Shown here piece after piece: positions 1,870 to 50,369 of a DNA stretch of 64,000 bases. The first letter of the stretch is position 1; each line of letters starts with the position of its first letter. The DNA is taken from assembly GCF_963853765.1 (NCBI RefSeq), contig NC_088860.1, positions 38,750,001 to 38,814,000 on the forward strand, read 5' to 3'. This DNA comes from Magallana gigas (taxonomy: Eukaryota). The notes below the pieces were generated by a model. The model worked only from the letters and a program-made list of their open reading frames with translations. It searched no databases and was not told the DNA's origin. The translations under genes and the position numbers were made by a program.

Positions 1870-1947
1870 CCAATCAGATAAGAGAGTGGCGCCGGTCTGA
1901 GTCACGAGATCTCGTTCACAGGAAGTGAGACGACCCACAACATGGCG
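1870..1947 (+). promoter_or_regulatory. Housekeeping-type promoter motif cluster (CCAAT, AP-1, palindrome, ETS, YY1-like)
   Basis: CCAAT 1870-1874, TGAGTCA 1898-1904, CGAGATCTCG 1905-1914, CAGGAAGTG 1919-1927 and AACATGGCG 1939-1947, all within a locally GC/CpG-richer 80 bp. Confidence 0.4.
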
Positions 1948-2754
1948 ATCATTGGCGGCGATTACAGATCTGTTCCAATTAGATGCAAATTTTACTTAAC
2001 TCTGTGATTTAGTCATTGTCTTTTTTACCGGAAAGTGTGCCAGTTTGGATGAAACCAAGTACACATGTTGTAGTGTAATTCATTAGCTTAAAGTGATGTT
2101 CACATTATTATTTGATGTAGAAACGTAACAGCTCACATGAACTTATGCGATTTGAATAGAGGAAATTATATTTGCGAAATTACCGAAAATTAAAACAAAC
2201 AAAAACAAAAAAATTACAAAAAACTGGGACGTTTGACATCTCAATTCATTGTTTAGGTGAATTTACGGCCATCAACCCCTTGAAAAAATATGATATAATT
2301 GAATAAACGTAAACAAAAATTTTATGCATTTACTAAATTAATAGAAATAGGAAAGACCAAACCCTTTCAGAATTGTATATGGCTTGTGTAAAAAGTATCA
2401 AATAATAAACAATTGCACATTAGCAGTTTACTTTAAGAATACCGTTTCAGTCACGTGGTAATGTAAGTGCACGTATATAAAGAACACGGAAACACCAAAT
2501 TCGATTACAGATGCGCAAAACCGAAGCGTGCTGGGACACAATAGGCAGAAAATCTCTTTGTTTCCTTCTATGTATTTGTATAAGCATATGTTATATTACC
2601 ACAGACGGGTCTTAGATCGACATTTTCAATCATCTTATTAGTCCTGACCTACATAACAATTGTACTTTAATTAAATTCGTACGACTTTTGTAATAATTGG
2701 TGTCAGGCTGTATTTGAACTTAATATTAATCAAAGCTGATATTTTTCTTTTTTC

Positions 2755-2758
<4 letters not shown>

Positions 2759-2788
<30 letters not shown>
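2759..2788. repeat. (GA)15 microsatellite
   Basis: Direct reading. Confidence 0.97.
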
Positions 2789-2791
<3 letters not shown>

Positions 2792-3045
2792 AATCAAATG
2801 AACATATTTTTTACTGCGCACTTCCCTTATAACAGATGAAGATGAACTACATTCATTCTTGCATGTCTTATGGCTGAATTCTTACCAATCTCTATTTAAA
2901 CGGAATGTTATATTTAATGATAAGGAAAATTCTCAATTCCAGCACTGCGACCTCCTTTGTCGTGAACAATTTGATTTTCTCTATATTGTTTTATAGTAAA
3001 ATCTAACGATAACTTAATCTTATTCTTGTCATTATTAAGATTTTA

Positions 3046-3600
3046 GTTTTTGGGAGTTGATTTTAATCAACTCTCCTATGCAGTTATTCAGACAAACCGA
3101 AAGTGAAACAGTGTTTGGACCTCAGCACATATCATTGCTGTTGACAAGACTTAGTTCTTGAAATTAATTGATAAATTCGATGTAATGTATGCTAAAGCAT
3201 TGTTTTTCAAGGAAACTTATTTATAAATACCTTGAAAATAGACAGATTTTATGCAGTTATTCAGACAAACCGAAAGTGAAACAGTGTTTGGACCTCAGCA
3301 CAAATCATTGCTGCTGACAAGACTTAGTTCTTGAAATTAATTGATAAATTCGATGTAATGTATGCTAAAACATTGTTTTTCAAGGAAACTTATTTATAAA
3401 TACCTTGAAAATAGTCAGATTTCAAATGGTATGGACAATTTAAATATTTTTTGTAGTCGTATGTATTCCTACGCCAGAGTTCAATATAGTCTCGTTTAAC
3501 TCAACGCTCGGCTGTCTCCGTAAATCTTTGTCGGAGATTTACGGTGTCAGCCGAGCGTTTGGATGAACGAGACTAGAGTTCAATATTGCTTGGATCCATA
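3046..3600 (+). mobile_element. Dispersed composite repeat with a 173-bp internal tandem duplication and a nested hairpin MITE
   Basis: TATGCAGTTATTCAGACAAACC... occurs at 3077 and 3250. Hairpin AGTCTCGTT...AACGAGACT at 3488-3574 is flanked by the 12-bp direct repeat AGAGTTCAATAT. An inverted homologue lies at about 36170-36620. Confidence 0.8.
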
Positions 3601-4668
3601 CAATTTTCGAGAAATATTTCTATTACTGATACATAGTTTAATTGAATTAATTTTATCTTTAAATATTATTTAACATATGGGGGTTTCTCGACATTCTTGT
3701 CGAAAAAGTCCAAAAATTCATATTATAAAATGTGCATAATTCATCTTCATAAATAAGTAACTACATATACTTGTCATGCAAAAAAACATATCATTGATTT
3801 TAAAATAAATAAACATCGACAAAATCAACTCCCGTCAGTTCTTCAGTACTTTGATTATAATAAGTTGCCGCTTAAATGTCATGGATTTGTTATTATGTGT
3901 GTCAAAGAAATTACACACCTTAGAATATCTATTTCATTTTTTACTTTTTATATATTTAAATAATGCTAATATCTAATGGATTTTTCTAATGTAAAATATG
4001 CAGGAATATCCAGAGTTTTAAGAAATCCATCAACATATTGTGAAAACGGAAAACAAGCATGGAAAAAAAATAAATACAATGGATTGAGACAAATTATATT
4101 TGAGGGGGAGGCGAAGAAGTATTGCACAGCGTTTGTAAAAACGTGCCTGCTTGTATTTTATTTGGGCGTAAGGCCTGAAAATTGTTTACTTGTATGTGAA
4201 AACAACTCCAAAAAAATTATAGAGGATCTAAACGACGACGTCAACATCAATAATGTTGATTTTACATTATAAAATCTTGTATGTGAAACTGTAAACAAAC
4301 CTGACGGACGACCATGCGCAATTCTCCTCAAAATTCTCACTAATTTTAATTTGACTACCTGTAATTTTGTTATCTTATATGCCGAATAACACTCCCTGCA
4401 AAATATGCATCAAATAAATATTTTTACGTTCTATTCGAAATGCAATTAATTTGCTTCTTTAGTATAATCTGAAATTTATTTCTTCAGAATTACTATTTTA
4501 TTGTAGTTACAATGCAATACTTTATTATCATATTATCACACGTATATTAAAAATTGCTACATGAATCTATATATCTTTGCTTATCTTTGTTTGGTAAATC
4601 TACCAGGTTTTTTGTTAATAATACGAAAGCATTTGCACGATTTTGGTAAAAAATTCTGTTTTCCGATT

Positions 4669-5150
4669 TTAAAGGGGCATGGTCACTTTTTTTCTCAAAA
4701 AATATTTTTCCGATTTTAATATCTACATTGCTTGAGAAAGGCATTTCTAATAGGCAACCGATATTTGAGTGTCATTCGTTGAGTTATAAGCGAGTTTGGA
4801 ATTCTTCGCTATGTTAACAGAGCGTTTGTTTACATTTTGAACGTTAGTTTTAAACCTAGAACGAATGTGTTAAACGTTAGAAACTGTTTCTCTATGCTTA
4901 AAATAAATAAAAAGATAGACAAATAAGTTGGAAAAGATTTTTTTACTGGTATATTGAACTTATGTAAACAAAAACAGGACACGAGCCGCCTTGTTTACAT
5001 GACAAAGACTTGTGAGCCCTGTATCATGCTTATAACTCTACGAATGATTCTCAAATTTTATTTGACCATTAGAAATGCATTACTAAAGCATTTTAAATAA
5101 TAAAAACATAAAAATAGAATTCAACCAAAATCGTGATCATGCCCCTTTAT
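4669..5150. mobile_element. TTAA-flanked non-autonomous DNA transposon (Kolobok-like termini)
   Basis: TTAA-AGGGGCATGGTCAC (4669-4686) ... GTGATCATGCCCCT-TTAT (5133-5150). A TTAA target site with RR...YY termini fits Kolobok; the family assignment is inferred. Confidence 0.7.
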
Positions 5151-5168
5151 TGTTTACAATGCCTCAGT

Positions 5169-5525
5169 AAGGCATTTTTAATAGACAACCAAAATATGAG
5201 TGCCATTCGTTGAGTTATAAGCGAGTTACAGAACTTACATTCATTGCTATGTAAACAAAAATTTTGTTTGCATTCTGAATTTTAAGTAAAAATTTCAGTT
5301 TCAAGCCTGAAACGAATGTGTAAAATGTTAGGGACTGTTTATTTATGCTTAAAATCTGTAAGAAGATAGACAAATCAGCTTGAAAAAGATTTTTCACTGG
5401 TGTATTGAACCTATGTAAAAAAAAACAGGGCATACGCCTTGTTTACATGACAAAAACTTTTGAGCCATGTATCCTGCATATAATTCTACGACTGACTCTC
5501 AAATTGCATCTGGTTATTAAAAATG
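5169..5525 (+). mobile_element. Adjacent truncated second copy of the 4669-5150 element
   Basis: Repeats AAGGCATTT...CATTCGTTGAGTTATAAGCGAG...ACTGGT(A/G)TATTGAAC...TTGTTTACATGACAAA seen at 4739-5085. Confidence 0.75.
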
Positions 5526-5561
5526 CATTAAAAAACAATTACGATTACGACAAAGAGAATT

Positions 5562-5685
5562 CTCACTCCTCCTAGGCACCTGATCCACCTCTATCGATTT
5601 GGAAGTCCGTGTTGCTCTGCTTTGAATTTGTATTTCGTTTTATGGATTTTCGAGATGGTTCACGGTTTCTTATTGTCATTTTTTA
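5562..5685 (+). mobile_element. Short terminal fragment of a retroelement/SINE-type repeat (family uncertain)
   Basis: CTCCTCCTAGGCACCTGATCCACCTCT...CCGTGTTGCTCTGCTTTGAATTTGTATTTCG...TTATTGTCATTTTTT resembles an abundant bivalve repeat 3' end; this is from memory and unverified. Confidence 0.35.
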
Positions 5686-5829
5686 AATCTAGCTTGTCAG
5701 GTTCATACACGAAGCTACAGTTAAAATATTCTATGAGGATTTTACATCGCGAACCACATGCTAGTTCTTGGATCATAATGATGAAAAATTGTGTGAGGTA
5801 TTCTGGATAGTAATAAAATGCAGCATGTA

Positions 5830-5885
5830 TGGCCTACTTGCGAGTCGGACACACGTCTTGTAATTGCGGTTGCTGGTTCGATCCC
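5830..5885 (+). pseudogene. Very degenerate tRNA-like cassette
   Basis: TGGCCTACTTG (A-box-like), CT-TGT-AA loop, GGTTCGATCCC B-box at 5875-5885. Confidence 0.35.
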
Positions 5886-6386
5886 CTAATGTCTTTAACT
5901 TTTTTGTTTCTTTTCATCAGGAGTACAATGATAAAAAACGAAAGTTGAGATCATATTTGCAGCTTTTTTAATCTGCTTAAAAGTTAAAGCAATAAAAACA
6001 AATCTTAAACAAACATTTTTTCATTAATATTCCACATTTTTTTGACACACACCTTGATCAATTATGTTGTCTGAATTTAATCTCAACTCGAAATATCAAA
6101 TGATTAGATACATAAGGTTTCTGATTTCAAGACCAGTCAAAGAACACCAATACTAGTACCTTTTCAAATGAGTACTTCAGTAAAACTAGGTACATGTATA
6201 TTATGGTTTTTGAAAAATGTACTTCTCGTTAAATCCAAACACTAAATTAATTCAACAGAAGGGGAAAAGTGCTGTTTTACCCCTTTCCTTGAATATAAAT
6301 CTCTGTTCTCGTCAAATTCTTAGGTTAATAAAAAGACGTGTCAACTATAAAGAAGTCTTTTGATCGATGCTTTACCTTATATAAGG

Positions 6387-6535
6387 AATAAGGAATCATT
6401 CTTTGAGTATTATGAGGTGATAATTTCGGTCGGGGCGTGATCAAATCCAATAAAGCCCGAAGGGCTTTATGATAGATTTGATCACGCTACGAACGAAATT
6501 ATCACCTCATAATATTCACAGAATGATTCCTTATT
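6387..6535. repeat. About 150-bp palindromic (foldback) repeat centred on GCCC-GAA-GGGC
   Basis: Arms AATAAGGAATCATTCT...TATTATGAGGTGATAATTTCG...GCGTGATCAAATC and their reverse complement. Confidence 0.85.
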
Positions 6536-7289
6536 ACTTATATTTATATAATTTTAGGCCATCGTATGATTAAATATATAAATATGAATAAGCAAACCCC
6601 GCTGGCGCCTCAATTTGGCGTCATTTGTATTATGGGTTTTATAGTACAAAATCGATACATAGTGTTATTACAGACAAAGACACTGGGAATGTAAATATAA
6701 TTTATTGATATAAAGTACACCTCCCTGACAAGCATGTGAATTATTTTTAAATTGTCAAATTATGAAAAAAAACCTGGGACAGAGAATAGATGTTTTATTG
6801 ATAACAAATATCTTTTATTGATTGTAGCAAAATAGCTTTGGACTACGAAAAGTAAATTATTTGTTTGAACTAATTCATTAAAATTTCACCGTAGTTGGAC
6901 ACAAATGAAAAATTCAAATAATTCAATAAAAGAATTTTTATTACATAGAAACGAAAAAAAACATGCATTATATACTTTACAATATAAATAACATAAAATC
7001 ATGGATATAAAAATCACATATTAATAACAAAAAAAAGACGTATAGAAATGCTCAAGTTCAATTACATTTTGCCCTGAGTATAGAAATATATGTGACTTGC
7101 ACATATATAAACTTATTCTTCTACATATGCATGCAGCTGGTCATTAGATACAGAACTAGGATCATTGGCTTCCTGAAAATTCAAATAAATAAACATCATC
7201 AGTATATCGAACAACAATCAGTGTCATACCCGTGTGTATTTTTTTTTCGAAAATAATACATATAAAAATATGATTTTGTGCAATACTTA

Positions 7290-9368
7290 TCATGTCGCCA
7301 ATTTAAGAATGTCGAACCCTCTGATAACCTCGGGGCTCACTTTCAAATGTTTGTTCCCACTTAATAAAAGTTGTCTTGTTCTTGATAGATAGGAAGTGCG
7401 TGTGACGTTTGTAATGTTATTGTTTTGAAACCAAAGATCCAGAATTCCATCTGGTAGCTGTTCCGGAAAGTCTGTAAGTCCGCGATTCCGACAGTCTACG
7501 ATCGTTATTCCACTGACAGACCTTTCATAGCAGGAACAGGTAGCTGGGCATTTTGGAATGTCTATTTTACAATAAGTATCCGACTCGGGCACCTGGAAAA
7601 CTGGCTTGTATCGGAATTCAGCCGGAGATGAACATTTCCAGTCATTGAAGAAATACTCGTTTCCCCTCAGAAGGCCATCAGCAAGCATTCTTTTAACAAA
7701 TCTAGTGAAATGGTTGATTCGACAGTCACAATGAATGGGATTGTCGGTCAAAATGAATTGGAAATATTTTAGCAAAATCAGTAGCTTAAGCTTTTTCATC
7801 CGAGCATTTAACCGTGTTGAAAGACTAGTTCCGAAATATTTTAGATGGAGGTTGTTAATTTTGCTTCCTGTTAAATCGATCCTTTTCAGCCTCCTTGGAG
7901 ACGATTTGAGCAGGTCGGTCTCTGTTGTGGTCGAGCTTTGTGCGTTACCTTCAGCAAGCAAAGAGAAATTCAAATCCAGAAGCATCTGTGTGAAATTTTG
8001 AAAATCAATGCTGGTATATCTTAAACTCACTTCTTGCAGCGTTTTGAAATACAGAACAGCATCCGGAAATTTGCTCAGTGGGTTACCGTCCAAAATCAAG
8101 GACTTGAAAGAAACCGAGAAAGCTGGAAACATAGAATAACTGAGAGTTACTATATTGTTATACTCCAGTCTAAGTTCTTGAAGGTGGTGAAGTCTTGAGA
8201 AGGCGTGGGGTCCAATCATTGCTATGCTGTTGTTAGAGAGGTCAAGGTAAACGAGTTCCGTATTATAATAAAACATGTCATCAGAAACCACAGACAAGAG
8301 ATTTGCGTGTAAATTCATGTGTCGGAGGGCGGTTAAACCACGGAACCCATCAGTGGGAATGTTTGAAAGGTAATTCACACTCAGGTCAAGATGCTGGAGA
8401 CCTGGCAAACCAGAAAACGTGAATGAACTGAAGGAGGACAGACCATTCCCAGATAATTTCAACATGTCCAAGTATCCCTCAAATCTGAATCCTACAAGCG
8501 TTTCTATATCGTTTGAATTTAAATTAAGAACCCGTTTTCGCATGTTTGGCTGTATGATGACATTGTATCTTGTAGCAGAATCGTACAAACCAGTTTCAGA
8601 TAGCGACTTGTTGTTTTCAAAGTACATTCGTTTATTATTCCATGGGAAATTAGGCGAAGTCTTCAAAAAGGAATCGGATATTTGTAGATCTTGTAGGTTT
8701 GGAAACTTATACTTAAGATGAGAAAGATGTTGATTTAAGTCAAAACGTCTAAATTGCAACTCTTTAACATTTGGAAATGTTTCATTACATTGAAACATTT
8801 CAGAAAAATTGACTGCATTATGTTTTTCAGGCAAAATAATCCCTATGGCGTTGGCGGACTTGAGATATCTGCAGTTAGAATTTAGCAATTTTGAACCATC
8901 ACAATAAGAATACTTTTGAAGTGGATATGTATTGATGAAAGACACGTGGTTAAAACTGGCGCGGTTACTAAGTGTGTTCAAGCTATCTGTTGTCAGAAGA
9001 CAGTTTTCTACTTGAACATGAAAAACCGCGTTTGGTATAGTTGGTCTGGCGTCTGGATTAAAATGAATAGTGTAGTTTGCAGCACATCGCATGATCAAGA
9101 CAGCAACTGCCCTGTTTCCGTTAAAATGGTAACTATCTAACACATCAGCTGTGTTCAGATAGCACTCATCTGATGATGGAGGCATCAAAGAAATTCCTAC
9201 AATGTTTGTCTTCAGTGGCTGATTGTTCACTTCCATAACACTGAATGATGTAGACTTAACTTGTCTGTAAAGACACTTCGGTATTCCGCATTGAGTAACA
9301 ATGTTTGCTGTCGAAAGTTTCATAGCAATAAAGCAGAAGCACCAAATAACGTTGAAATTTCGAAGCAT
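7290..9368 (-). CDS. TLR-A: ectodomain-only (secreted-type) Toll-like LRR protein, 692 aa, no TM or TIR
   Basis: ATG at 9368. Hydrophobic signal peptide (MLRNFNVIWCFCFIAMKLSTA), Cys-rich N-terminal region, about 10 LRRs (e.g. LQHLDLSVNYL, LVYLDLSNNSI), LRRCT (NPIHCDC...DWKCSSPAEF...TYC), LRRNT (CPATCSC...IVDCRNRG), then about 2 LRRs and a stop. Collinear with the ectodomains of B, C and D. Confidence 0.88.
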   Translation of the reverse strand: MLRNFNVIWCFCFIAMKLSTANIVTQCGIPKCLYRQVKSTSFSVMEVNNQPLKTNIVGISLMPPSSDECYLNTADVLDSYHFNGNRAVAVLIMRCAANYTIHFNPDARPTIPNAVFHVQVENCLLTTDSLNTLSNRASFNHVSFINTYPLQKYSYCDGSKLLNSNCRYLKSANAIGIILPEKHNAVNFSEMFQCNETFPNVKELQFRRFDLNQHLSHLKYKFPNLQDLQISDSFLKTSPNFPWNNKRMYFENNKSLSETGLYDSATRYNVIIQPNMRKRVLNLNSNDIETLVGFRFEGYLDMLKLSGNGLSSFSSFTFSGLPGLQHLDLSVNYLSNIPTDGFRGLTALRHMNLHANLLSVVSDDMFYYNTELVYLDLSNNSIAMIGPHAFSRLHHLQELRLEYNNIVTLSYSMFPAFSVSFKSLILDGNPLSKFPDAVLYFKTLQEVSLRYTSIDFQNFTQMLLDLNFSLLAEGNAQSSTTTETDLLKSSPRRLKRIDLTGSKINNLHLKYFGTSLSTRLNARMKKLKLLILLKYFQFILTDNPIHCDCRINHFTRFVKRMLADGLLRGNEYFFNDWKCSSPAEFRYKPVFQVPESDTYCKIDIPKCPATCSCYERSVSGITIVDCRNRGLTDFPEQLPDGILDLWFQNNNITNVTRTSYLSRTRQLLLSGNKHLKVSPEVIRGFDILKLAT

Positions 9369-9545
9369 TTTGGATAATGTTTTATCAACCAGTGCTTATT
9401 CTAATTTTTGTTCCCTGTTGATAAACAAGAGATGCTCTAGTCAGTCACAAATATTCCACGTTTGTATGATTTACATTCAATTTAAACAAGCATGTGTTGC
9501 TAAGTCTTTCGCCTTGTGTCGGCTGTCCAAACTTTGTAACAAATT

Positions 9546-12500
9546 CTGATTAAGAATGTTTTATCCGTTGGCACGCGTCCATTTTGGCCTATCAGAGATC
9601 GCAGATCTAGTCGAGTGGTAAAATCTTTCCGTAGCTTCCTGTAAGAATAATTATGTACATATTTAGTAAATACAGGCCGTTGAAACTCACTTGAAATCTG
9701 TCTGTCTTATTGGTCTGATTGGCGACTCTAATTGAATTCATGAATGATATATCATACGATAGAACCGCTAATATCAGCTTTTTGTGTGTCGATAACATAG
9801 GACTGGGTCATCAATCAGCGAACAGTGTATGCAATGATATATAGTCAGCGGGGATAAGAAATATCTCTTTCAAGTTTGATAACTCCAAAAAAAAATTGAC
9901 AATGAGAGTTGTATTTTTATGGGTAATAAAGACTAAAATTTTGTTTATATTCTCATTGTTGTATGAATTTTGTGTAAATCCATTACAAAGATAAAAAAAA
10001 CTGAAATAAACAATTCTTTGTATCCTTAAATCAAATTAAATTTATGACAAACTTTCAGTTTCACAAAAAAATTATGTAAAATTTGTCAAACATGTTAAAT
10101 TGCAACTTAAATCTAGTTTTCCGACAAAAGTTGTGCAAAAACTACAATAAAAAATATAAGATATTGATCAGTGGACATTTTAAAAACAAAATATTTTGAA
10201 GAAGTACAGAGTAAAGTTTACTCGCTCAAAGAATAATCGTAGTTTGTTTATTTGAACATCTGTAGAAACATCAGTGTTCTTGGGGGACCAATATTCATGG
10301 CTTTCTTGCACACGAATTTACATCCAAATTATTGCTCATATTATTGTGAGCTTTGAAGTACAGAAAAAACCATGCCGTTGAAAGGGCTTATAACATGTAT
10401 CATACGCTAACACATCATCGATATCATTTTGTTTAACATATGCAATGCAATGACATCTTTACCATATTATTTCCCTTCTGTTTAGAAAGCATTATCAATA
10501 CCTACATGATTATGAAGCAAAAACACCCCTTTGAAAAATCATTCTTATCATTTTGTTTAACATATTGAAAACATATCAACTTAACCATTTTATTTCTATT
10601 TTATTCGGAAAGCTAAACTAATGCATACATAATTCTGAACCTTGAATTGCGGTAAAAATATATAACTGAAACGACCTACTACTACTCGATAAATGAAACA
10701 TTCCAATTTTTTTGTCGACACACGCAAAGCAATAACTACCAGATCATCTTATATCTCTTCTTTTCAGAAAGAAAGCATAACCAAAGCCTAGGTAATCATG
10801 AACATTGAAATACAGTAAAAAAACATACCGTTAAAATGACCTAGTCCTATCAAATGACGCAACAATGTTTCTATCCCGTTTTTTAAAGTCGCATAAGGTA
10901 AAATAAATTGCAACGTGTGACAGTTGGAGTTAATAATAAAATATGTCATCCCTAATGCACTTTGTTATAAAATAATACAAGGATATTTATTTGTATGCAA
11001 GGTTTCTTTTTCTATTTTTATAAAAGAGGAATTTCGTGCCCTATGCTCTTTACCTGTTGAAACCCAAGACCTACATGAATGTGTGTTTAAATGGTGCACT
11101 CTTTCTGAAAAAGGGTACACGCATTCAAAAAACGACTTCTTAATTCTAATTAAACATAACAAGATAAAAAAAAAAAAGCTTAAAAGGTGCATGATTAAAA
11201 TTTAAATTAGAAAAATTAAACAAATCAAATTATGACAGGTTAACATACTGTTATGGCGCCTTTTGATAGAAAAACGAGACTTCATGGGTCTAAAAAGGGA
11301 TATGATCATATAAGATCTTATACAAATGGCGACTTATTTTTCCCTGAAAAAGTCGGTTTTACCTGATTAAAATATTTTAGTTGGTCTTAGATATGGAGAA
11401 GATATGCATTATTAAAAGCATTCAAAAGCAAGTAGGTGTTGTACTATTGAACACAGAAAACAAGATCTAATTAACAATTGGTTCTTTAAATTGTTTGAAA
11501 ACTATTGTTATAGGCGCTTTATGATAGCCTATTAAATAAACATGAGGCTCTGTCCGCGAATAATTTTGATCAGCTTTAAGAAAGTTGACAATTCAATGCA
11601 TTTTTGCAGAATTTTGAAAAAGTACTTTTGTTTAATATAATTATAATTATGCTCCATTTTTTCAGTGCTTTTGCATAAATTTATATATACATGTACATGT
11701 TTGAATGTTAAAAAGGAAATGGTTTACACTTTAGGGGATCAAATACATATTAATTCTTTAACAATTAATGATTTTTTGTGTAATAGTTAAAAAAAAAACT
11801 TCATAGCATAAATATTAATCTGAAATATGATTGGCTATGAAAACGAGATATTAAGGAGGCTGAATAGTTACCAAAATAACCATCAGATCTACATTAAGGT
11901 CAATATCTAGTAAATGAAAGGTGCCTTCAGGTTTATAAGTTTTAAGATGTAAACTCTTCCAATGATGCTCCAAAACAATAGCTTTGTCTGATAGGGTGTA
12001 CCGGGGCTAAAAGTTTTTGTAAACACAACGAAAAATCTTGTTTTAAACTGTCATTTTCAATGCAATATGAAAGAAATAAGGAACAAATCGCGGAGTGTTG
12101 TCCATTTTTGACTAATAAAATATATCTAAAATGCCTAGTCTCTCCAAATGATGTCAAATTAAATATAGGTATCAGGATTACTTTTCCCATAATTTAATAT
12201 AGAATGTCAAGGAAGTGTTTACTTTTCTAACTAATTTCTTTAACGCCTTAAAGTACGGGAAAACGATTCTTCAAATTAATTATGACGTCATAATGTTTCT
12301 AGCACCAAAAATACTTTCAGGAATCATTAACTAGATCTTGGCGTTAAATATTAAGAAATGATGATTTAAGCCATACACCTTTGTAAAGAAAAATTCTATA
12401 GATATTAGCTTTGAAATTTGAGTAACTCTTTTTTTATATCTTTATATAGTGCTCTTCTTAAAGAGATCAATTAGGACTTAAAATGACCGCCACCATCGGA

Positions 12501-12860
12501 CCCCTAAAGGTGTATTCAAATTTGCAATGTTTTAAATGTTGAGATTCTAGATGTATCTGGTTTTATTTGCCTGAATGACAAGTGTATACCATATGAAATT
12601 GTCTTAATAAACTCAATAATGCATAAACAAACCTCACCTGATTAAATGTTGCATAATGAAGAAATGCACAATATATGCAAATTGAGTTGCGTAGAAACTG
12701 CACCATATTTTGAATAATTCAATTAAAGTGCTCACCTGAGAAATCATGTAAATTTCTAACATGAAAGAAAAACTATGATAAGATATGCCCTTGATATATT
12801 TTTTTCCGACAGCTCTTATAATGCGCTGCATATATAAAACAATATTATTTTTGAACTTAC
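9546..12860 (-). other. Putative leader intron of TLR-A
   Basis: Acceptor CATTCTTAATCAG| at 9546 (177 nt upstream of the ATG; alternative at 9639), donor TAG|GTAAGT at 12861/12860, TATATAAATATA at about 12914-12925. Other CAG|GTGAG donors occur near 12637 and 12735. Confidence 0.38.
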
Positions 12861-18884: not shown

Positions 18885-18917
18885 TGTTGACGACGACGAC
18901 GATGATGATGATGATGA
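18885..18917. repeat. Compound (GAC)n(GAT)n microsatellite
   Basis: Direct reading. Confidence 0.85.
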
Positions 18918-22498: not shown

Positions 22499-25400
22499 TT
22501 ACATTTCTTTATCATCATTTTCTGAGTCAGTATAGTTGTCACTGTCGCTGACTTCTTCACAGTTAGAAGGGTTATGAGGAGCTGTTATTTGGTAATGTTC
22601 ACAACTGACAGCACAACTAAGAGGTCCATAATACGGAATGTCAGTATGTCCATGATTTTCTAACCTCACCTCAAATACATTGACATTCTGAATGTCCGAC
22701 AAGCTTTCGTCCTCCTCTTTAACATTCAAGCACATACTGTCTTTGATGTTCATTTGTAGGGACTTGCCGCATAACAATGTTTCATCACTTACGTTCAAGT
22801 GAATGCTGCTTTGATTTACTTCAGTCCTAATTTTGTTTTCGTCTTCACTTTCGTCGGTATCTGAGGACGAATCTATTTCACTATTCTCTTCGTATGACAA
22901 GCTTGAATTGTCCTCACGAGTGTTTTGTATACTTTCATTTTCACTCATATTTAAACTGCAACTTCTAGTATCATCGCTTGGTACATCAAAGTTATTTTCG
23001 ACGACAATGTTGATTTGTGCATTGTCAGCCTCTTCCTTTAGTTCCTCATCCTCGTTAATTTCGTCTCTGTTGTTCTCTATAACGTCATCATCATTATTAA
23101 CGTCAGTGTCACTATCTTCTGATGATTCAAACAACATGCTATCTGTTACGCTTTGGATATCGTTTTCAAAATTAAATATTTCTACTATTTGAGCCTCATC
23201 CTCGACACATCGTACACAAGGTTTAGCATCTGATAAAGAATTCAAAAGTTTTTGCACAAACCATTCCTCACCGATTTGCAGAATTACGTGAGTACTTACA
23301 AGATTTTTAATTTCCTCGTCAAGCTCGTCGATATCTACATTTTCACTCAAAATAACAATCAAATGATTACTTTTGGACCTTAAAGATTTTTCAAAAGCAG
23401 TTCGAAAAGTGAAAACTGACCACTCGTCTAGCAGGTGGTTCTCTGACACAAAGAATAGTGTGTGAAGGCAGCTGTCAATTGCTTTGAGAATATTTTCTTC
23501 CTTTGATGCCCCTGGTATAAAATCCCGGTCGGGAAGCCATAAAGTGTAACCTATTTCATCAAGAACAGGTTTAATATCGTTAAGCATGCAGTTGATTTCT
23601 GTTTCGGAGTATGAAATAAAAACATGGCGATCGTAAACTTCTTGTCTTAATGTAATGTCACCGTACATGTTCATAACACAGTTTTGTATGTTAGGTAACT
23701 TCTTATCTTTCACATCGATATCACTGAATCCTTTATGAACAGGCATACAATAAAGAAGTTTTTGACCAAACAATCTATCGTTCCATTTTATAATATTACT
23801 ATTCTTAGCAAATCGTGCCATTTCTTTGTTGGTTGTTTTTCTAAATCGTACGTTATAAAGCACGGTTACAACATAATTATGTCGTAAGGTTTTAATTTTC
23901 TCTTGTGCTTCGTTCCATATAAGTTTTAACATCTGTCCTTCCAATAAAAATTCTGGAGACACCACCAATATAAGTCGTTTACTATTTTTTACGATGCTAG
24001 AAATATTTTCTTGAAAAGAAAACCCTGGAATGAAATCCCTCATGATTTCGCATACGACGTATTGACTTTTTTGCTTTTCAAGATATGTGACTATGTTGTC
24101 CATCACCCACTGTGTTAAACCTGGAACGTGAATAACAAGAACATCCACGGGTTCTCTGCCTTCATCATCATCCAAATCAAATGGATGGATGCCCAAATAG
24201 AGAAATGTAAGAACTTTTGCCTCAAATCTAAATACATACAACAAACAGATTCCTATCAAACTAAGCAGAACTGCAAGTGTACTTGCTGTGGTTGGGATGA
24301 TGCCATCTTTAATAGAGTCATAATCTTCAATGCAGACAAAGTCAACGTCTGGAATATTGATGAATTTTGTACCCTGTTCGCTCTCATTGTCAACATTACA
24401 AGTAACATCTGCGATATCCAAGATATATTTTGATTTCTTTATAATCCAGTGTTTCATCCAAAGTGACTTGCAATCACATTTAAATGGATTGTGTTTGATA
24501 TCGATGAAATCTATGTTCGTCTTCTGTAATTCTCGTGGTAACGTCACTAGATTATTGGAATCCAAGAAAAGATGTTTAAGATTCATTATTCGATCCAATG
24601 CTTTAGTTTTTATTTCGTGAATTTGGTTGCTCGAAAGTGAAAGATGTCGTGTACGATTTAAGTATTCAACATTTTCCAAAACAGACACGTTATTATGTTG
24701 AAACCATATATCAAGAATTCCATTTGGAAGTCGATTCGGAAGGAAGAAGTAACCACGATTCCGACAGTCAACGATGATAACCTTACTAACGTGTCGCTCA
24801 AAACAAGTGCAGTTATATGGACAATGTGGAACAATTTTTTTGCAGTAAGTATCTGATTCCTTGATATTGACAACCAGTTCATTCTTCATTTCGTCCGGCG
24901 TAGAACATTTTAATTTCTGAAAAATATATTCAGTTCCGGAAAACTCACCACGTTCTTTTGCCTGAAGGATAATCCTATTAAACTCGTTGATTCTGCAATC
25001 ACACGTGAATTTGATTCCGTCTAAAATGAATTCAAAGTACTTGACAATTAACAGAAAGATTTTTTGAACAACATTTTTTTTATTCTTCATTTGCACGATT
25101 GAACCAGACTCTTTGTAGCCTTCCAGCGGTGCCAGATAAAAATTTTCAAGTTTTGATCCAGACAGATCTATTATTCTGAGTTTCTCTGATGTTTTGAAAA
25201 ATACTTTATCTATAGTACCTGGTGAAGATGTGATTACACTCATTTGTAGAGAATACCAATTTATTCTGTACAACATTTCGTTGATATTACGTAGGTGAAT
25301 ATTTGTGTTCCGAAAACTCGCTTTTTCCAAAGTTCGAATGTAAAGTATAGATAAAGGAATGTTTTCTAGTGGATTCATATCAATGAGTATATTTTTCAAC

Positions 25401-26656
25401 TTTAAAGAGGCGGCAATAAACAAATTGTCTGGCAGGTGCTTTATTTCGTTAGATCTTAAATTTATTTCTTCTAAATTAGGTAATCCTCCAAACGCATTTT
25501 CTTCGACAGTTTTGATTTTATTATATGATAAATCCAAGTACTTTAAATTCTTGGTATCCGAAAATACCTCCTTAGAAATTTCTTTTAGGTTATTAGAACT
25601 CAAATCCAAATGTTGCAAATTCTGCAGCAGTTTGAATAAATTCCTTGAAATGGTATTCAGTGAATTATTTCTCAGGTTTAAACGTTCCAACTCCATAAGG
25701 CCAGTGAAAGTAGTTTCATTAATATGTCGAAGTCCATTACAAGACAAATCCAATATTAGCAAGTTTCCGTTAAATGCAAAATTTCTTAAATCGCGTATGT
25801 TATTATTTTTTAGCGTTAGTGAAGGTGTAAATTTCTTGTCAAATACAGTATTTTCCCGATTGGCACTTTTTAAATCTTTTGAAATGTTTTCTTTTGAATA
25901 TTCATTTTCTTCATTCCATGGAAACCTTGGTGGCATTGTTATGTTTGAATACGAAATTTCCAACCTCTGCAAATTTGGGAACTTTTTTTCAAGAACGGAT
26001 ATTGTTCGTAGATCCATTGGAATACCTTGCATTAATAGCGTTTTAACTGAAGTATATGAATGGGGACAACTGACTAGAAACGTGAGATTATGTTGTACAT
26101 AATTTGATGTTGATCCTTCCAGGGAAAATAAGTTTACAGATGACAACACGCCACACATATCTTTGTTCGAATGAATGCTATCACAGGGATTTTTTTGAAC
26201 GGATATTGTTGTATCCTTTAATGCTAAAGAGCTAATTTTGCCGAAGTTCTTCTTCAACACAAAATAGGAATCCAAAGTGAAACGACATGTTGAAATTTTT
26301 ATGGTCGAAAAAGTAACGTTGTTCGGAAGTATTTCATCAGAATAAAACTGCAGCCATACAGCCGATAAACATTCAAAGGAAATCAATCCATAGTCAGTAT
26401 TTACGTTCAAAAGACCAAACAATGACGTTGTGTTAATGGAACAATTGTAATTATTTTCAATAACTACTTTTTTCTCAATGTTGTTGGTTGGTGATTGGTC
26501 GCTTGTAGAGAACCCCGAAGTCCTTTCTCCATCTACGTTTATTTTACACTCCGGAAAAGAACATATGTTGCTGCCATTGACCAATAATCCACCATTAGAG
26601 ATAACGATCGTTGATGCCATGACGATGTAAAAAACATTAACATTTAAGATGTTCAT
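22499..26656 (-). CDS. TLR-B: multiple-cysteine-cluster Toll-like receptor with twin TIR domains and a long acidic tail, about 1385 aa
   Basis: The ORF track starts at a TTG (26728); the first in-frame ATG is 26656 (AAAATGA), followed by a signal-like segment. LRRs, LRRCT (FTCDC), LRRNT (CPYNCTC), LRRCT (NPFKCDC), TM at about 24230-24305 (IIPTTASTLAVLLSLIGICLLYVF), TIR1 (DVLVIH...RDFIPG, about 23740-24145), TIR2 (HVFISY...LPDRDFIPG...EWSVFTF, about 23232-23626), D/E/S-rich tail. Confidence 0.93.
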   Translation of the reverse strand: MNILNVNVFYIVMASTIVISNGGLLVNGSNICSFPECKINVDGERTSGFSTSDQSPTNNIEKKVVIENNYNCSINTTSLFGLLNVNTDYGLISFECLSAVWLQFYSDEILPNNVTFSTIKISTCRFTLDSYFVLKKNFGKISSLALKDTTISVQKNPCDSIHSNKDMCGVLSSVNLFSLEGSTSNYVQHNLTFLVSCPHSYTSVKTLLMQGIPMDLRTISVLEKKFPNLQRLEISYSNITMPPRFPWNEENEYSKENISKDLKSANRENTVFDKKFTPSLTLKNNNIRDLRNFAFNGNLLILDLSCNGLRHINETTFTGLMELERLNLRNNSLNTISRNLFKLLQNLQHLDLSSNNLKEISKEVFSDTKNLKYLDLSYNKIKTVEENAFGGLPNLEEINLRSNEIKHLPDNLFIAASLKLKNILIDMNPLENIPLSILYIRTLEKASFRNTNIHLRNINEMLYRINWYSLQMSVITSSPGTIDKVFFKTSEKLRIIDLSGSKLENFYLAPLEGYKESGSIVQMKNKKNVVQKIFLLIVKYFEFILDGIKFTCDCRINEFNRIILQAKERGEFSGTEYIFQKLKCSTPDEMKNELVVNIKESDTYCKKIVPHCPYNCTCFERHVSKVIIVDCRNRGYFFLPNRLPNGILDIWFQHNNVSVLENVEYLNRTRHLSLSSNQIHEIKTKALDRIMNLKHLFLDSNNLVTLPRELQKTNIDFIDIKHNPFKCDCKSLWMKHWIIKKSKYILDIADVTCNVDNESEQGTKFINIPDVDFVCIEDYDSIKDGIIPTTASTLAVLLSLIGICLLYVFRFEAKVLTFLYLGIHPFDLDDDEGREPVDVLVIHVPGLTQWVMDNIVTYLEKQKSQYVVCEIMRDFIPGFSFQENISSIVKNSKRLILVVSPEFLLEGQMLKLIWNEAQEKIKTLRHNYVVTVLYNVRFRKTTNKEMARFAKNSNIIKWNDRLFGQKLLYCMPVHKGFSDIDVKDKKLPNIQNCVMNMYGDITLRQEVYDRHVFISYSETEINCMLNDIKPVLDEIGYTLWLPDRDFIPGASKEENILKAIDSCLHTLFFVSENHLLDEWSVFTFRTAFEKSLRSKSNHLIVILSENVDIDELDEEIKNLVSTHVILQIGEEWFVQKLLNSLSDAKPCVRCVEDEAQIVEIFNFENDIQSVTDSMLFESSEDSDTDVNNDDDVIENNRDEINEDEELKEEADNAQINIVVENNFDVPSDDTRSCSLNMSENESIQNTREDNSSLSYEENSEIDSSSDTDESEDENKIRTEVNQSSIHLNVSDETLLCGKSLQMNIKDSMCLNVKEEDESLSDIQNVNVFEVRLENHGHTDIPYYGPLSCAVSCEHYQITAPHNPSNCEEVSDSDNYTDSENDDKEM

Positions 26657-27700
26657 TTTCACAACTGTACACAATATTAACTTGGCATGGAATTTATGCA
26701 AAACAAAATCCAGGATGTATATATCCAACAGAATTTTCTTCAGTATTTCATTTTAATATGCATAATTTATTTCGGCACTTTTGCAATAACTTTCTCACTC
26801 CTTCCAAAATTTCCCCGTCTCAATCTATATAAAATAAAACATTTAAACATAAATTAATTGTAAAACATTTCATTAAAACACGTCACCTTCTTCCCCATTT
26901 TTCTTTCGAAATGGAAAGGAAGAAGTTATTCCCTTCGCAATAAATCCACAGTATTTTAAGACGATGAAATTGTTATGCAGAATGGAAATTACAAATGGCA
27001 AATTTGCATAAGAGGACCTCGTAAAATCTTAATTAAGAACAGTGTTTGATCGCTTAGCTTTAGAAATGCACTCAAATGCTGAGTGTTGGATGTATTACTA
27101 ACTAAAAGTACAATAGCCAGCCAGAACTATAATGCATCGCCTGATCACTTGCTTTTTATTAATATGCAAGTTATTTTAATGGCAAATTCTTAGTTTTATT
27201 TATGGTGCGTAATTTTCTATTTATTGCTTTGTAATGCAAGTTTCAGGTAAATTTCGATGGGTCGAAAATATTTTTTTAAAAATTGATCGAAGCATTTCGT
27301 ATAAATCAACGATTAGTCAAAAATAAATGTAAAATTGCTTTTAAAATTTTTGTATTATAATTCTTTTAGGGGCGTAGTAACCATTTTTTATTTTCTATGT
27401 TTTAATCTCAGAACTGTTTTTTCCGAGTTGTATAAAATGTATAAAGACTGTAAAAGATACAGAACTCAGAAAATATTTTTCATGCAAACAAACATCCAAG
27501 CATCGTGCCATGGTGCTTTTGATTGTATTTTAAATACCAATTGGTTAAAGGTTCTTCTTGCTAATTCGATATGAATACAGATAAATAGTATTTAGTGTTT
27601 TTCATTTTCAAATATGTTTGATATCTTAAAATTCTTTTTAGCATTAGAAATGTAAATATAACTATATACAATACAAAAATATATCATGAAGTTATGCAAA

Positions 27701-46673: not shown

Positions 46674-49600
46674 TCATTGTTTCTTTCTTTCATTTTCATT
46701 GATATCAATAACATCAGTTTCGTCCTTTTGAAAAGCTCTATTTTGATAGTGTTGTGTTCCGTTCAAATGAATATCTGTCAACTGAACATGACCATTCATT
46801 TTCCCATTTTGGATTTGGATTCCATTTTTCTTTTCCTCATTTTCTATCATATCGGCAACTATCCTGCTTAGTCCGTCTTCCATCTTCGTTTTGTGCAAGT
46901 TTTCGAAGTCCACAAAATTATTGTCGTCGTGTTTAATGTACAACTCGTGGTTTTCGATATCAGGGAGGGCATTCAATAAACGTCTGATAAAACCCTTCTC
47001 ACTCACTTTAAGAGAAACGTGTGTCTTCACGTAAGCTCGTACCTCCTCCCCCATTGTTTCCACATTCACATCATCACCTAGAACCACAATGAGGTGATTA
47101 CATTTTTCTCGCATTGACTTTTCACTGGCGGATCTGAAAGTAAAAACTGACCACTCATTATCTAACTGTTCTCCAGAAAGAAGAAATATGGTATGTAAAC
47201 AGTTGTCAATCGCTTTTAGGACATTTTCCTCTTTTGGTGCTCCAGGAATAAAGTCCCTATCTGGTAGGCATAGTGTAAACCCATTGTCTTCTATAATTGG
47301 TCTCAGTTCGTTCATGACGTACCCCATATCGCTTTCGCAATACGACAGGAAAGCATGTCTTTCATACATCTCCGCGTCCGTGACATCGTTCCCATACATG
47401 TTCTGAATAAGATATTTTAAGTCAGGTAGACTTTTGACTCTCATGTCGTCGCCAGTTATTTGTGGCATGCAGTATAAAAGTTTTTCTTGAAAGAAACTTT
47501 GATTAGCATCAATGTAACGACCTCTTTTGATATATTGCTGCAAATCTTTGTCTGGAATTTCTTTTAAATTCACATCGTATGACACAACAATGGCGTAGTT
47601 AGTTTTAAGAGCTTTAATCTTTTCTTGGGTCTCATTCCATGCAATTTTTAAGATGTCGTCGTTTATGAATTCCTTTGAGAGCACGATTACTATTCTTTTA
47701 CTATGTTTCACCAACGTGGCAATATTTTCTTGGTATGAAAATCCTGCTACAAAATCTCGCATCATTTCGCAAACTAAATAATGAGCACTACTGAATTCCA
47801 AATATTCAACAACATTTTCCATTACCCATTTCGTCGCTGCTGGTGAATGTACCACTAGTACATCTACAATTTCTTTACAGTCCTTATCCTGATCAAAGGG
47901 GTGAAATCCAAGGTATATATAAAGTAGGACCTTGATTTCAAGCCTATAAATGTACATCAGGCAAATGGTTATAATCATCAAGACTAAAACAACAGATGCA
48001 ATCACACTTGGAACAAGAACCTTATTATAAGAATCAAAGTTTTCCAGGCATACAAACTCGTTGTCTGGTACACTTAGAAATTGTCTTCCATTTTCGTGTT
48101 CTTTATCAACGTTACACGTAACTTTTTGCGAATTAATGGTTATATTTGGTTTATTTAACATCCAATGTTTCAACCAAACCGTATTGCAATCACATTTAAA
48201 GGGATTATCTTCTATATTAAGTTTTCCTGAGAAATAGTCCTGGATTTCAGAAGGCAAAGATACCAAAAAATTAAAGTTCAAAAATAGTTCCTGAAGGTTT
48301 TTCAATTGACGGAACACACTAGACTCAATTTGTGCAAGACTATTATGAGACAAATAAAATGAACGAATGTGGTTGAGGTATATTCTATTACTTAATGTTG
48401 TTATGTTGTTTTGATGAAACCAGAGGTCCAAGCTACCAGAAGGTAACATTTTAGGTAAAGAGCGAAACCCTCTATTACGACAGTCTACGATGGTTATATT
48501 GCTGAGAGATCTTTCATAACATGAGCAGTTGAATGGGCAAAGTGGTATATTTTTCTCGCAATATGTGTCCTTTTCGGGGACTTCTAGTAAACTGTGGCTT
48601 TCAAACTCAGCTGGCCATTGGCATTTCCAATCGAAGCTTTTATCAGCTTCAAGAATATTGTCTTTTATTAAAAAGTTCAATACTTTTGAAATTTGGTTAA
48701 TTCTGCAATCACAGCGAAGAGGATTGTCTTCCAAAATAAATTTGAAAGTTTTAAACACCAGAAGAAGATTTTGGTGCAGTTGTTCAATTTCTTTTGATTT
48801 TATCTCGTTAACCTCATAGTTTGGTATTTCCAAATTGTCAATTTTGCTTCCAGTTAAATCCAAGATAACTGAGTGTTTATCGTCGATTGGCTGTCTGACA
48901 ACGAAATTTTGGTTTTCTACTGTTGTTTCGTTATTTACTCCATCTTGAATCGGATTTCTTGTAAAGTCTAAAATTGTTTGAGTAAAGTTTTTAAATTTCG
49001 CATTTGTGTTTTTCAAACTTATTTTTTCTAATAATTGAAGTGAGAACACAACCTCTGGGACCTCGGAGAACCCATTACCGTCAAGAATAAGCTTCTTAAA
49101 TTCTATAGAGCGACTTGGGAAAACGTTTGCATGTATTGCCGCAATTTTATTATATTCCAAATGAAGTTCCCGTAAGAGCCTCAAATGAGAAAAAGTGTTT
49201 TGTTCAATGTTGCTTATTTTGTTTCCGGAAAAGTCCAAGTACACCAAATTCAAATTATCAGAAAAATGATCGGATGACAGATAACTGATATGGTTGTTTT
49301 TAAAATCAAGATGTCGAAGTTCATTTAAGCCTTTAAAAGAGTCTGTTGGAACATGTACCAACTCATTAAAACTTAGATCCAAATACTGAAACCCTCTAAG
49401 ATTTCTAAAGGTATCATTACTGATAGTATGAAGTCTATTTCTGGATAAGTCGAGTTTATGTAGAAATCCTCTGAAAGTGTGGTTGGAAAGATCCGTAATT
49501 TGGTTTTTGCTTAGTGACATTGTTTTCATATGCATGTCATTAGGTACTTGAATGTGAAAAATTTCAGCGAATTCATAGTGTTCTGTATCGGTTCTGGACA

Positions 49601-50369
49601 TGTTGAAACTTAAATGCAACCAAACATCACTCCATGGAAAATCTGGAGGTTGCATCAGGTCGGAGTTTTCAATGGAGAGGACTTGTAATCTCGGAAACAT
49701 ACTGGGTAACTGAGAGAGATACTGCTTCATTGGGAACTTTACAAAGTTAATTTCTTTCATGTAAGGAAAGGTGGTGTTGCAATAAAAAAGCTCCTTGATA
49801 GATTTGACTGAGTTTGTTAAATTTTTAGGCATATACGTGATACCTTCTAGGGTATTCCACACTTTACAGCTATTTCTATGAATTGGTTCTCCGTCACAGT
49901 ATTTCATATCTAATGATGGATATTTTGTGTAGAAGTTGACCATAAATATCTTGAATCGGTTTTGAATCGGATACAGTTGCTCCTGGGATATTGTACAATC
50001 CTTAATCTGTATATATGACATCACATTTGGTAAAAATGGCCTGTGGTCGTCAGTAAAATATACTTCAACATCTTTATGACACAAGAACACTAGTACTGCA
50101 TAAACAGGTTTGGTGTCAAAGTTGAAGGCGTCGATAAATTCTTTCGTATCCACATAACACCTGGAATCAGTGTAGGGTTCCATGAGAAATAAAAATAATC
50201 CGAACATTTTGGTTTCCATAGTTTCATTGAGATAGTGCATGGTATTTGGTGCTGGCTGTTCACGTAAGTAAAATTCACATTTAGGAATTCTACAGTTGGT
50301 TACGTTTTGAAGATAAACCACCGAAAACAGACTACAAACGCACATAACTCGTAACAGTATTGGCTCCAT
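46674..50369 (-). CDS. TLR-D: multiple-cysteine-cluster Toll-like receptor with twin TIR domains, 1231 aa
   Basis: Signal peptide (MEPILLRVMCVCSLFSVVYL), LRRs, NPLRCDC / CPFNCSC / NPFKCDC clusters, TM at about 47945-48020, TIR1 (DVLVVH...RDFVAG), TIR2 (HAFLSY...LPDRDFIPG), N/E/D-rich tail. Confidence 0.95.
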   Translation of the reverse strand: MEPILLRVMCVCSLFSVVYLQNVTNCRIPKCEFYLREQPAPNTMHYLNETMETKMFGLFLFLMEPYTDSRCYVDTKEFIDAFNFDTKPVYAVLVFLCHKDVEVYFTDDHRPFLPNVMSYIQIKDCTISQEQLYPIQNRFKIFMVNFYTKYPSLDMKYCDGEPIHRNSCKVWNTLEGITYMPKNLTNSVKSIKELFYCNTTFPYMKEINFVKFPMKQYLSQLPSMFPRLQVLSIENSDLMQPPDFPWSDVWLHLSFNMSRTDTEHYEFAEIFHIQVPNDMHMKTMSLSKNQITDLSNHTFRGFLHKLDLSRNRLHTISNDTFRNLRGFQYLDLSFNELVHVPTDSFKGLNELRHLDFKNNHISYLSSDHFSDNLNLVYLDFSGNKISNIEQNTFSHLRLLRELHLEYNKIAAIHANVFPSRSIEFKKLILDGNGFSEVPEVVFSLQLLEKISLKNTNAKFKNFTQTILDFTRNPIQDGVNNETTVENQNFVVRQPIDDKHSVILDLTGSKIDNLEIPNYEVNEIKSKEIEQLHQNLLLVFKTFKFILEDNPLRCDCRINQISKVLNFLIKDNILEADKSFDWKCQWPAEFESHSLLEVPEKDTYCEKNIPLCPFNCSCYERSLSNITIVDCRNRGFRSLPKMLPSGSLDLWFHQNNITTLSNRIYLNHIRSFYLSHNSLAQIESSVFRQLKNLQELFLNFNFLVSLPSEIQDYFSGKLNIEDNPFKCDCNTVWLKHWMLNKPNITINSQKVTCNVDKEHENGRQFLSVPDNEFVCLENFDSYNKVLVPSVIASVVLVLMIITICLMYIYRLEIKVLLYIYLGFHPFDQDKDCKEIVDVLVVHSPAATKWVMENVVEYLEFSSAHYLVCEMMRDFVAGFSYQENIATLVKHSKRIVIVLSKEFINDDILKIAWNETQEKIKALKTNYAIVVSYDVNLKEIPDKDLQQYIKRGRYIDANQSFFQEKLLYCMPQITGDDMRVKSLPDLKYLIQNMYGNDVTDAEMYERHAFLSYCESDMGYVMNELRPIIEDNGFTLCLPDRDFIPGAPKEENVLKAIDNCLHTIFLLSGEQLDNEWSVFTFRSASEKSMREKCNHLIVVLGDDVNVETMGEEVRAYVKTHVSLKVSEKGFIRRLLNALPDIENHELYIKHDDNNFVDFENLHKTKMEDGLSRIVADMIENEEKKNGIQIQNGKMNGHVQLTDIHLNGTQHYQNRAFQKDETDVIDINENERKKQ

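Follow-up and report, generated by a model that had tools for sequence, protein, structure and literature searches.

A conserved and transcribed gene for a TIR-less Toll ectodomain fragment in a twin-TIR receptor cluster of the oyster Magallana gigas

Gene structure and transcription of the truncated locus

The window analyzed here is a stretch of 64,000 nucleotides from Magallana gigas (positions 38,750,001 to 38,814,000 of NC_088860.1, assembly GCF_963853765.1). It consists of AT-rich DNA (GC ~0.31) with four long open reading frames (ORFs) on the minus strand, designated A to D. Three of these (B, C and D) correspond to full-length Toll-like receptors (TLRs) with two TIR domains, and the fourth, A, is a truncated relative. 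The evidence presented below makes it very likely that A is a conserved, selected and transcribed gene for a fragment of a Toll ectodomain, with a signal-like N-terminus, no predicted membrane anchor and no TIR domain. A previous annotation made from the letters of the window (hereafter the sequence-only reading) had reported an intact frame of 692 codons at 7290-9368, and this frame was recovered here from ATG to TGA. The same reading had proposed the product as a candidate secreted decoy or pattern-recognition protein, a functional label that is an inference. The features of gene A are the following:

7290..9368, minus strand: gene A, complete coding sequence, 692 codons from ATG to TGA (stop 7290-7292), with a TAA directly after
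10829..10915, minus strand: exon 1, non-coding 5' untranslated region (5'UTR), from an RNA contig of run X1 in which only its 3' part is seen
9639..10828, minus strand: 5'UTR intron of 1190 nt, from a splice joint in RNA run X1; CT..AC on the plus strand
9369..9638, minus strand: 5'UTR portion of exon 2, covered by RNA contigs of runs X1 and X8 up to 9637-9639
6900..7289, minus strand: 3'UTR, RNA-covered from 7289 to 7029, with an end at ~6900 predicted from AATAAA at 6937-6942

The transcript was reconstructed from assembled RNA contigs, which give neither expression levels nor true 3' ends and from which rare isoforms are dropped. A contig of 2630 nt from run X1 spans 7095-9637 on the minus strand and is spliced on to 10828-10900 and beyond; in the contig that defines exon 1 (record 7 of this run), 9637/9638 is joined to 10828/10829 and the match continues to 10900 plus 14 letters. 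Read on the minus strand, the intron starts with GTATGT and ends with a pyrimidine tract and AG, conforming to GT..AG. Run X8 contributes three contigs over 7029-9639. The contigs of both runs cross the stop codon of A unspliced, with no joint in or 3' of the ORF. Given the splice joint in X1 and the unspliced contigs of X1 and X8 over the ORF and its stop, gene A has two exons, a non-coding first exon and a second one that holds the entire coding sequence. The RNA contigs include at least 261 nt of 3'UTR. All three AATAAA candidates listed in the sequence-only reading (6937-6942, 6814-6819 and 6794-6799, minus strand) were found at those coordinates, and the first of them, which is kept in a congener, is likely to be the poly(A) signal of A. 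The double stop at 7290-7295 (TGA-TAA, and TGA-TAG in the congener) leaves little scope for read-through. In an index search limited to RNA-Seq libraries, the sequence of A, or part of it, was present in 14 runs from 7 studies, and at least half of it in 8 runs from 2 studies. Lack of expression and splicing to a distant exon encoding transmembrane and TIR domains, which the sequence-only reading had named as findings that would speak against it, are contradicted by the spliced mRNA and by the unspliced passage over the stop. An upstream ATG at ~9582, within 9560-9590 of the minus strand in the 5'UTR of exon 2, opens a short upstream ORF before the main start at 9368.

Domain architecture and predicted structure

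The domain architecture of A was established through hydropathy, Pfam searches, structural modeling and alignment with the three neighboring paralogs, each of which lies on the minus strand:

22499..26728, minus strand: paralog B, full-length twin-TIR multiple-cysteine-cluster TLR (mccTLR), open frame of 1409 codons, with the start Met likely ~23 codons in (Pfam)
37137..40916, minus strand: paralog C, full-length twin-TIR mccTLR, 1259 aa (Pfam)
46674..50369, minus strand: paralog D, full-length twin-TIR mccTLR, 1231 aa, nearest relative of A (Pfam; tree)

The segments recognized in A, where LRR denotes a leucine-rich repeat, are:

9306..9368, minus strand: predicted signal peptide, aa 1-21, cleavage after S-T-A (hydropathy and -3/-1 rule)
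8769..9305, minus strand: N-terminal Cys-rich cap, aa 22-200, eight invariant Cys (alignment; model)
7749..8768, minus strand: main LRR block, aa ~201-540 (Pfam LRR_8 6.9e-26, LRR_4, LRR_1; model)
7569..7748, minus strand: LRRCT1 cysteine cluster, aa 541-600, Cys 547/549/579/600 (alignment)
7449..7568, minus strand: LRRNT2 cysteine cluster, aa 601-640, Cys 607/611/613/626 (alignment with B-D; Pfam LRRNT)
7293..7448, minus strand: two terminal LRRs without a C-terminal cap, aa 641-692 (alignment with B-D)

The signal peptide proposed in the sequence-only reading corresponds to an N-terminal hydrophobic, signal-like segment, which is the sole strongly hydrophobic 19-mer of the protein, with no other exceeding a hydropathy of 1.6. 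In B, C and D, a transmembrane helix at aa ~790-815 reaches values of 2.4-2.95. As a putative signal-bearing protein without a transmembrane or glycosylphosphatidylinositol anchor, A was judged by hydropathy, which supports an N-terminal signal and shows no transmembrane helix; its C-terminus is non-hydrophobic. The 18 Cys of A are distributed among the signal segment (2), the cap (8, at positions 27, 32, 69, 95, 123, 156, 166 and 194), LRRCT1 (4) and LRRNT2 (4), and the claim that the cysteine clusters are intact is borne out by the invariance of all 16 mature-protein Cys across the six oyster A-type proteins described below. The Pfam LRRNT match, at aa 607-639, is below the curated cut-off. 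The protein also contains nine N-glycosylation sequons.

Alignment reproduced the LRR register shared with B up to the stop and placed the end of the A frame where the third LRR of the membrane-proximal block begins, ahead of the second LRRCT, the transmembrane helix and the TIR domains, as the sequence-only reading had stated. Relative to B-D, A is without two LRRs, LRRCT2, the stalk, the transmembrane helix and both TIR domains. Pfam detects LRR families in all four proteins and two TIR stretches in each of B, C and D, with no TIR match in the A protein. The description of A as ectodomain-only is hence correct as to the absence of transmembrane and TIR parts and has to be amended as to the ectodomain, which is partial, the membrane-proximal ~100 residues being gone. 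Under the usual definition of a TLR by LRR, transmembrane and TIR domains (PMC8609888), A has the first and neither of the other two and therefore classifies, on its sequence, as an LRR-only TLR-like protein and not as a TLR.

An AlphaFold2 model of A, computed from a 20-sequence alignment (mean pLDDT 87, pTM 0.83), is an unbroken LRR solenoid with a regular beta-strand ladder in the main LRR block (pLDDT >90), long beta strands in the cap (pLDDT 85-94), a helical insertion preceding LRRCT1 and a signal segment modeled as a low-confidence helix apart from the fold. The top Foldseek matches in the PDB were the Drosophila Toll-Spaetzle complexes (4lxr/4lxs), Aedes Toll5A (7b1b-d) and C. elegans TOL-1 (8suf). 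Matches to insect Toll had a TM-score of ~0.43 and a sequence identity of 15-17%; modest TM-scores are usual for long curved solenoids. Among solved chains, Toll5A gave the longest sequence match, over aa 299-672 of A. The domain order of Drosophila Toll and Aedes Toll5A (LRR block, LRRCT, LRRNT, LRR) is that of A, whereas both are membrane receptors with a single TIR. The N-terminal LRR block that A has kept is presumably the Spaetzle-binding part in the 4lxr complex.

Paralogs in the cluster and the search for the missing half

On sequence criteria, B-D are twin-TIR mccTLRs. A nomenclature for such receptors of bivalves was reportedly provided by Gerdol et al. 2017; the name SPP-2TIR for the bivalve twin-TIR class is that of Saco et al. 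2023 (PMC10279657). A is a direct paralog of these receptors in the same tandem cluster, sharing the cap, the LRR block, LRRCT1 and LRRNT2. In tblastn comparisons, its identity to B-D is 33-38% over their first ~685 residues, and B-D share 38-44% identity among themselves. B-D each encode the entire protein in a single exon, and A is a single-copy gene at a separate locus, which has a 5' exon of its own and lies 13 kb away from the neighboring paralog. Across the whole assembly (564 Mb, 29 contigs), a six-frame search returned only A-D as matches to A at E<=1e-30.

A normal receptor could still be produced if the coding exon of A were spliced, in at least one major isoform, to distant exons encoding the transmembrane and TIR parts. 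A donor-like GTGAGC at ~7340, within the last LRR, and an acceptor-like TTTCAG at ~7175 are compatible with such splicing, and rare isoforms are dropped from contigs. Against this, the contigs of two RNA runs are unbroken from 9637 to 7095 and 7029, and no exon to splice to was located. The sequence-only reading had seen no transmembrane or TIR remnant in 1-7289; in agreement with this, a tblastn search in which the C-terminal halves of B-D served as queries (word size 2, E<=20) gave only chance-level matches in 1-7400 and 9369-22498 (best E 0.14, scattered on both strands). Nor was coding sequence for these parts found at E<=0.05 within 10 kb downstream of the A orthologs in two Saccostrea genomes. 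Moreover, the family has only four members genome-wide, all accounted for, of which B-D are single-exon, and products of 692-699 aa are annotated in four other species. Splicing to a distant exon is thus largely refuted and regarded as very unlikely. An alternative tail after the TTTCAG at ~7175, comprising 19 open codons faintly like the acidic tail of C, was also considered, either as the kept tail of an internal deletion or as an alternative last exon, and was dropped, there being no RNA joint and a likeness of few residues.

Some further observations concern the paralogs. The open frame of B starts at TTG and extends ~240 residues past the second TIR, so that its tail is far longer than those of C and D; B is also the longest branch of the tree described below (1.32). 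A 247-aa antisense ORF at 25359-26102 overlaps B and is probably spurious. In S. echinata (L006), the orthologs of A and of D (P0140) are on different contigs, of 2.2 Mb and 29 Mb respectively, and no paralog occurs within 10 kb of the A ortholog in either Saccostrea genome; the tandem layout of the window may not be conserved, or the Saccostrea assemblies may be fragmented.

Orthologs, age of the truncation and selection

Orthologs of A were collected through a word-based protein search with the A protein, which returned five oyster sequences:

P0001: 692 aa, 92% identity, congener, Logan contigs
P0002: 699 aa, 68% identity, Crassostrea virginica
P0003: 692 aa, 67% identity, a further oyster run
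P0004: 696 aa, Saccostrea cucullata
P0005: 697 aa, Saccostrea echinata

The next matches were full-length unionid TLRs (31%). In an alignment of the six oyster A-type proteins, all end at a common column, with C. virginica alone extending seven residues further. This exact protein is already present in NCBI and UniRef, where its 90% cluster of 501 members holds XP_052703770.1 ("protein toll-like", Crassostrea (Magallana) angulata); all 15 of the members listed for this cluster are 692 aa long, and the annotators of four other species likewise give products of 692-699 aa. A maximum-likelihood tree was inferred from the A-homologous region of the six A-type proteins, B, C, D, five D orthologs and eight outgroups. 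The A-type proteins form a single clade (100/100) that is sister to the clade of full-length D proteins (91/91) within the B/C/D group. The internal branches of the A clade are no longer than those of D, and ortholog identities are alike for the two genes (92/64-68% for A versus 91/62-68% for D). Because orthologs with the same end fall in one clade, sister to D, sequence comparison places both the A/D duplication and the truncation before the Crassostrea/Magallana-Saccostrea split. By descent, the same tree assigns A to the twin-TIR mccTLR (SPP-2TIR) lineage. The truncation is ancient on this evidence, and A has probably been kept in oysters for tens of millions of years.

Selection was assessed with the Nei-Gojobori method on codon alignments of the two usable species pairs, since dS was saturated between genera; C. 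virginica was left out. The window and its congener yielded dN 0.038, dS 0.255 and dN/dS 0.149 (binomial p 1.5e-27 versus neutrality), and S. cucullata and S. echinata yielded dN 0.050, dS 0.59 and dN/dS 0.085 (p 1.3e-62). Both ratios are far from the value near 1 that the sequence-only reading had listed among the outcomes adverse to it. Constraint extends to every segment of A, with ratios of 0.11 for the congener pair and 0.05 for Saccostrea over the last 92 residues, and of 0.13 and 0.07 over aa 641-692. Synonymous sites were compared with non-coding DNA, where the window and the congener agree at ~91% of positions for the intron, 92% for the 5'UTR, 93% for the 3'UTR and 85-87% farther downstream. 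Intron and intergenic divergence (~9-15%) is below the dS of 0.255, and the dN of 0.038 set against it gives a ratio of ~0.2-0.4, such that dN in A is well under neutral even against these slower yardsticks. For D and its congener ortholog (dS 0.254), dN/dS was 0.226 over the A-homologous part and 0.148 overall. Purifying selection on A is therefore at least equal to that on the ectodomain of D, and A is maintained by selection across species.

These results also bear on whether A might be a recently truncated pseudogene, or its stop an artifact of assembly. Expanded TLR clusters often contain truncated copies, and expression of A is low in some runs. Against this, the stop is shared among several genera, dN/dS is 0.085-0.15 (p<1e-27), and all 15 listed members of the cluster have the same length of 692 aa. 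As to the assembly, colinearity with the window over 10105-5687 is seen in four independent contigs of the congener, except for a 349-bp insertion in the window, and together with the RNA contigs that run colinearly over the stop they show that there is no misassembly at this position. The break at the stop that the sequence-only reading had asked to be checked is consequently absent, and we consider a pseudogene or assembly artifact refuted, with next to no probability left to it. To account for the open frame, that reading had named two possibilities, selection for a soluble product and truncation in the very recent past. The shared stop, the 100/100 clade and the low dN/dS favor the first and contradict the second.

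Functional interpretation

The truncated form is transcribed and selection has retained it across several genera of oysters, so A is probably the gene of a secreted immune-recognition or regulatory protein and not a dead gene. In the scenario that we propose, A would have arisen by duplication of a twin-TIR mccTLR, as sister to D, and would have lost the last two LRRs, LRRCT2, the transmembrane helix and both TIR domains before the Crassostrea/Magallana-Saccostrea split. Its product would be a secreted glycoprotein carrying the nine sequons noted above. In insect Toll, the Spaetzle-binding surface lies in the N-terminal LRR block. Since A keeps this block and loses the membrane-proximal module and the signaling parts, its product may bind and yet be unable to signal by itself; outside the cell, it could bind the class of ligand recognized by its membrane sisters and modulate their signaling. 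Action as a ligand sink or decoy would rank first, followed by action as a ligand-presenting co-receptor, as has been proposed for teleost TLR5S (PMC7460618, PMC7744196); the functional direction of A is a guess. As a whole, this explanation (a functional A whose secreted product modulates the sister TLRs from outside the cell, most likely as a decoy) is the best available and, in our estimate, somewhat on the probable side. The more specific proposal, namely that A is a secreted antagonist or co-receptor derived from a twin-TIR Toll that shares the Spaetzle-like or microbial ligand of D and tunes Toll extracellularly, is put forward tentatively, its chances falling a little short of even.

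Several points weigh against this explanation. The product of A is known from gene, transcript and model, from which secretion, glycosylation and binding are deduced, and the call of a signal peptide depends solely on hydropathy and the -3/-1 rule. Stable secreted LRR proteins do not usually end in an uncapped LRR, as A does, and the final six residues are disordered in the model. That A and D share a ligand is an assumption, the two proteins being just 38% identical, and the data fit inhibition and enhancement alike. The bulk of the RNA support consists of assembled contigs, with no levels or true 3' ends, and in two poly(A) runs of which ~1% of reads were sampled (X20 and X21) there were almost no reads from the ORF. 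The near-zero counts, which were not taken as absence, indicate that expression of A is low or confined to certain tissues or conditions.

The main rival to modulation of the sister receptors is that A acts as a free humoral pattern-recognition protein or opsonin, its solenoid binding microbial molecules directly and setting off agglutination, phagocytosis or the release of effectors via partners other than the sister TLRs. It draws on the same structural and evolutionary evidence, and the RNA runs that bear A include some labeled as oyster metagenome or metatranscriptome. There is also a precedent in the scallop CfLRRop-1 to -6, LRR-only proteins that bind LPS (lipopolysaccharide), PGN (peptidoglycan), glucan and poly I:C, induce effectors and have been proposed as humoral pattern-recognition proteins (PMC5877582). 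Compared with A by description, the scallop proteins are small (1-4 LRR domains), of unrelated architecture and not derived from a Toll ectodomain. The nearest solved relatives of A bind a protein cytokine and not microbial patterns, and A evolves at a slow, D-like rate. Proteins that bind pathogens directly often evolve under diversifying selection, of which A gives no sign at the level of overall rates, site-wise tests not having been made. We regard an opsonin role as rather doubtful. Less probable still is a non-immune extracellular LRR protein of TLR descent, engaged in development, adhesion or neuronal guidance. Developmental roles are on record for protostome mccTLRs (PMC8609888), strong and uniform purifying selection suits a housekeeping or developmental ligand interaction, and near-zero expression in two poly(A) runs could mean stage-specific expression. 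Such a role is improbable, given that A lies within, and is sister to, a cluster of immune-type twin-TIR TLRs and that, with tissues and stages of expression not on record, nothing positive speaks for it.

Comparison with known systems

Soluble or TIR-less TLR paralogs are already known as a kind. Teleost TLR5S retains a complete, capped ectodomain, whereas A ends inside the membrane-proximal LRR block and is uncapped at its C-terminus. TLR5S, a separate gene for a secreted TLR5 ectodomain (PMC7460618, PMC7744196), is like A a germline paralog of a membrane TLR without transmembrane and TIR parts, present clade-wide and with a presumed joint role with the membrane form. Its origin is separate, from a single-cysteine-cluster vertebrate TLR as opposed to the protostome-type mccTLR that gave rise to A. 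Like TLR5S, A is a separate gene, as distinct from a splice isoform or a shed fragment. Mammalian RP105/CD180 (3rg1), a TIR-less TLR paralog that modulates a signaling TLR, ranks 26th among the structural matches of A; RP105 differs in having a membrane anchor and a complete ectodomain and in its dependence on MD-1. Hydra HyLRR, also a TIR-less TLR relative, is anchored in the membrane and partners a TIR-only protein, whereas A has no transmembrane helix. More generally, LRR-only "TLR-like" proteins are numerous and left out of TLR counts (Orus-Alcalde et al. 2021, PMC8609888); A is likewise related to TLRs and devoid of a TIR, and is set apart by a documented subfamily of origin, a documented age of truncation and documented selection.

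In the literature, of which our coverage was incomplete, no study was found of a soluble and conserved protein derived from the bivalve twin-TIR class, or of the function of A. Gene A itself is already annotated automatically in several species, and because an NCBI gene model exists and the kind is known, the advance stays incremental as long as no regulatory function is demonstrated. Next to nothing is known of the ligands of bivalve TLRs or the restraint of their signaling, and bivalves have the largest known TLR repertoires (PMC10279657). TLR surveys exclude LRR-only relatives by design (PMC8609888), and conserved soluble derivatives are therefore overlooked. Within this setting, A is a clean case, with a known parent family, an old truncation, clear selection and demonstrated transcription. 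If the proposed role is true, A would be an independently evolved invertebrate counterpart of fish soluble TLR5 and the first soluble regulator known among Tolls of the protostome type (mcc), and would open a direct route to the ligand of twin-TIR TLRs. Its soluble and readily expressed ectodomain could also be used as bait for that ligand. In oyster farming, A is a candidate for marking or modulating immune responses.

Repeats downstream of gene A

Two regions beyond the 3' end of A have the character of repeats. A high-copy non-autonomous repeat of ~323 bp lies at 6377-6700 and contains a 69-nt internal inverted repeat. At least 2525 candidate copies of it, many 94-97% identical, are found in the same genome, on every chromosome, and it is missing from a congener contig (L001); other copies make the RNA runs very deep at this position. 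Its features suggest a young element similar to a miniature inverted-repeat transposable element, inserted ~200 bp past the predicted poly(A) site of A. Farther downstream, the segment at 5000-5787, which is ~76-85% identical to the congener, is covered to a high and patchy depth in each of the four RNA runs, with many variant letters, and probably represents another dispersed repeat.

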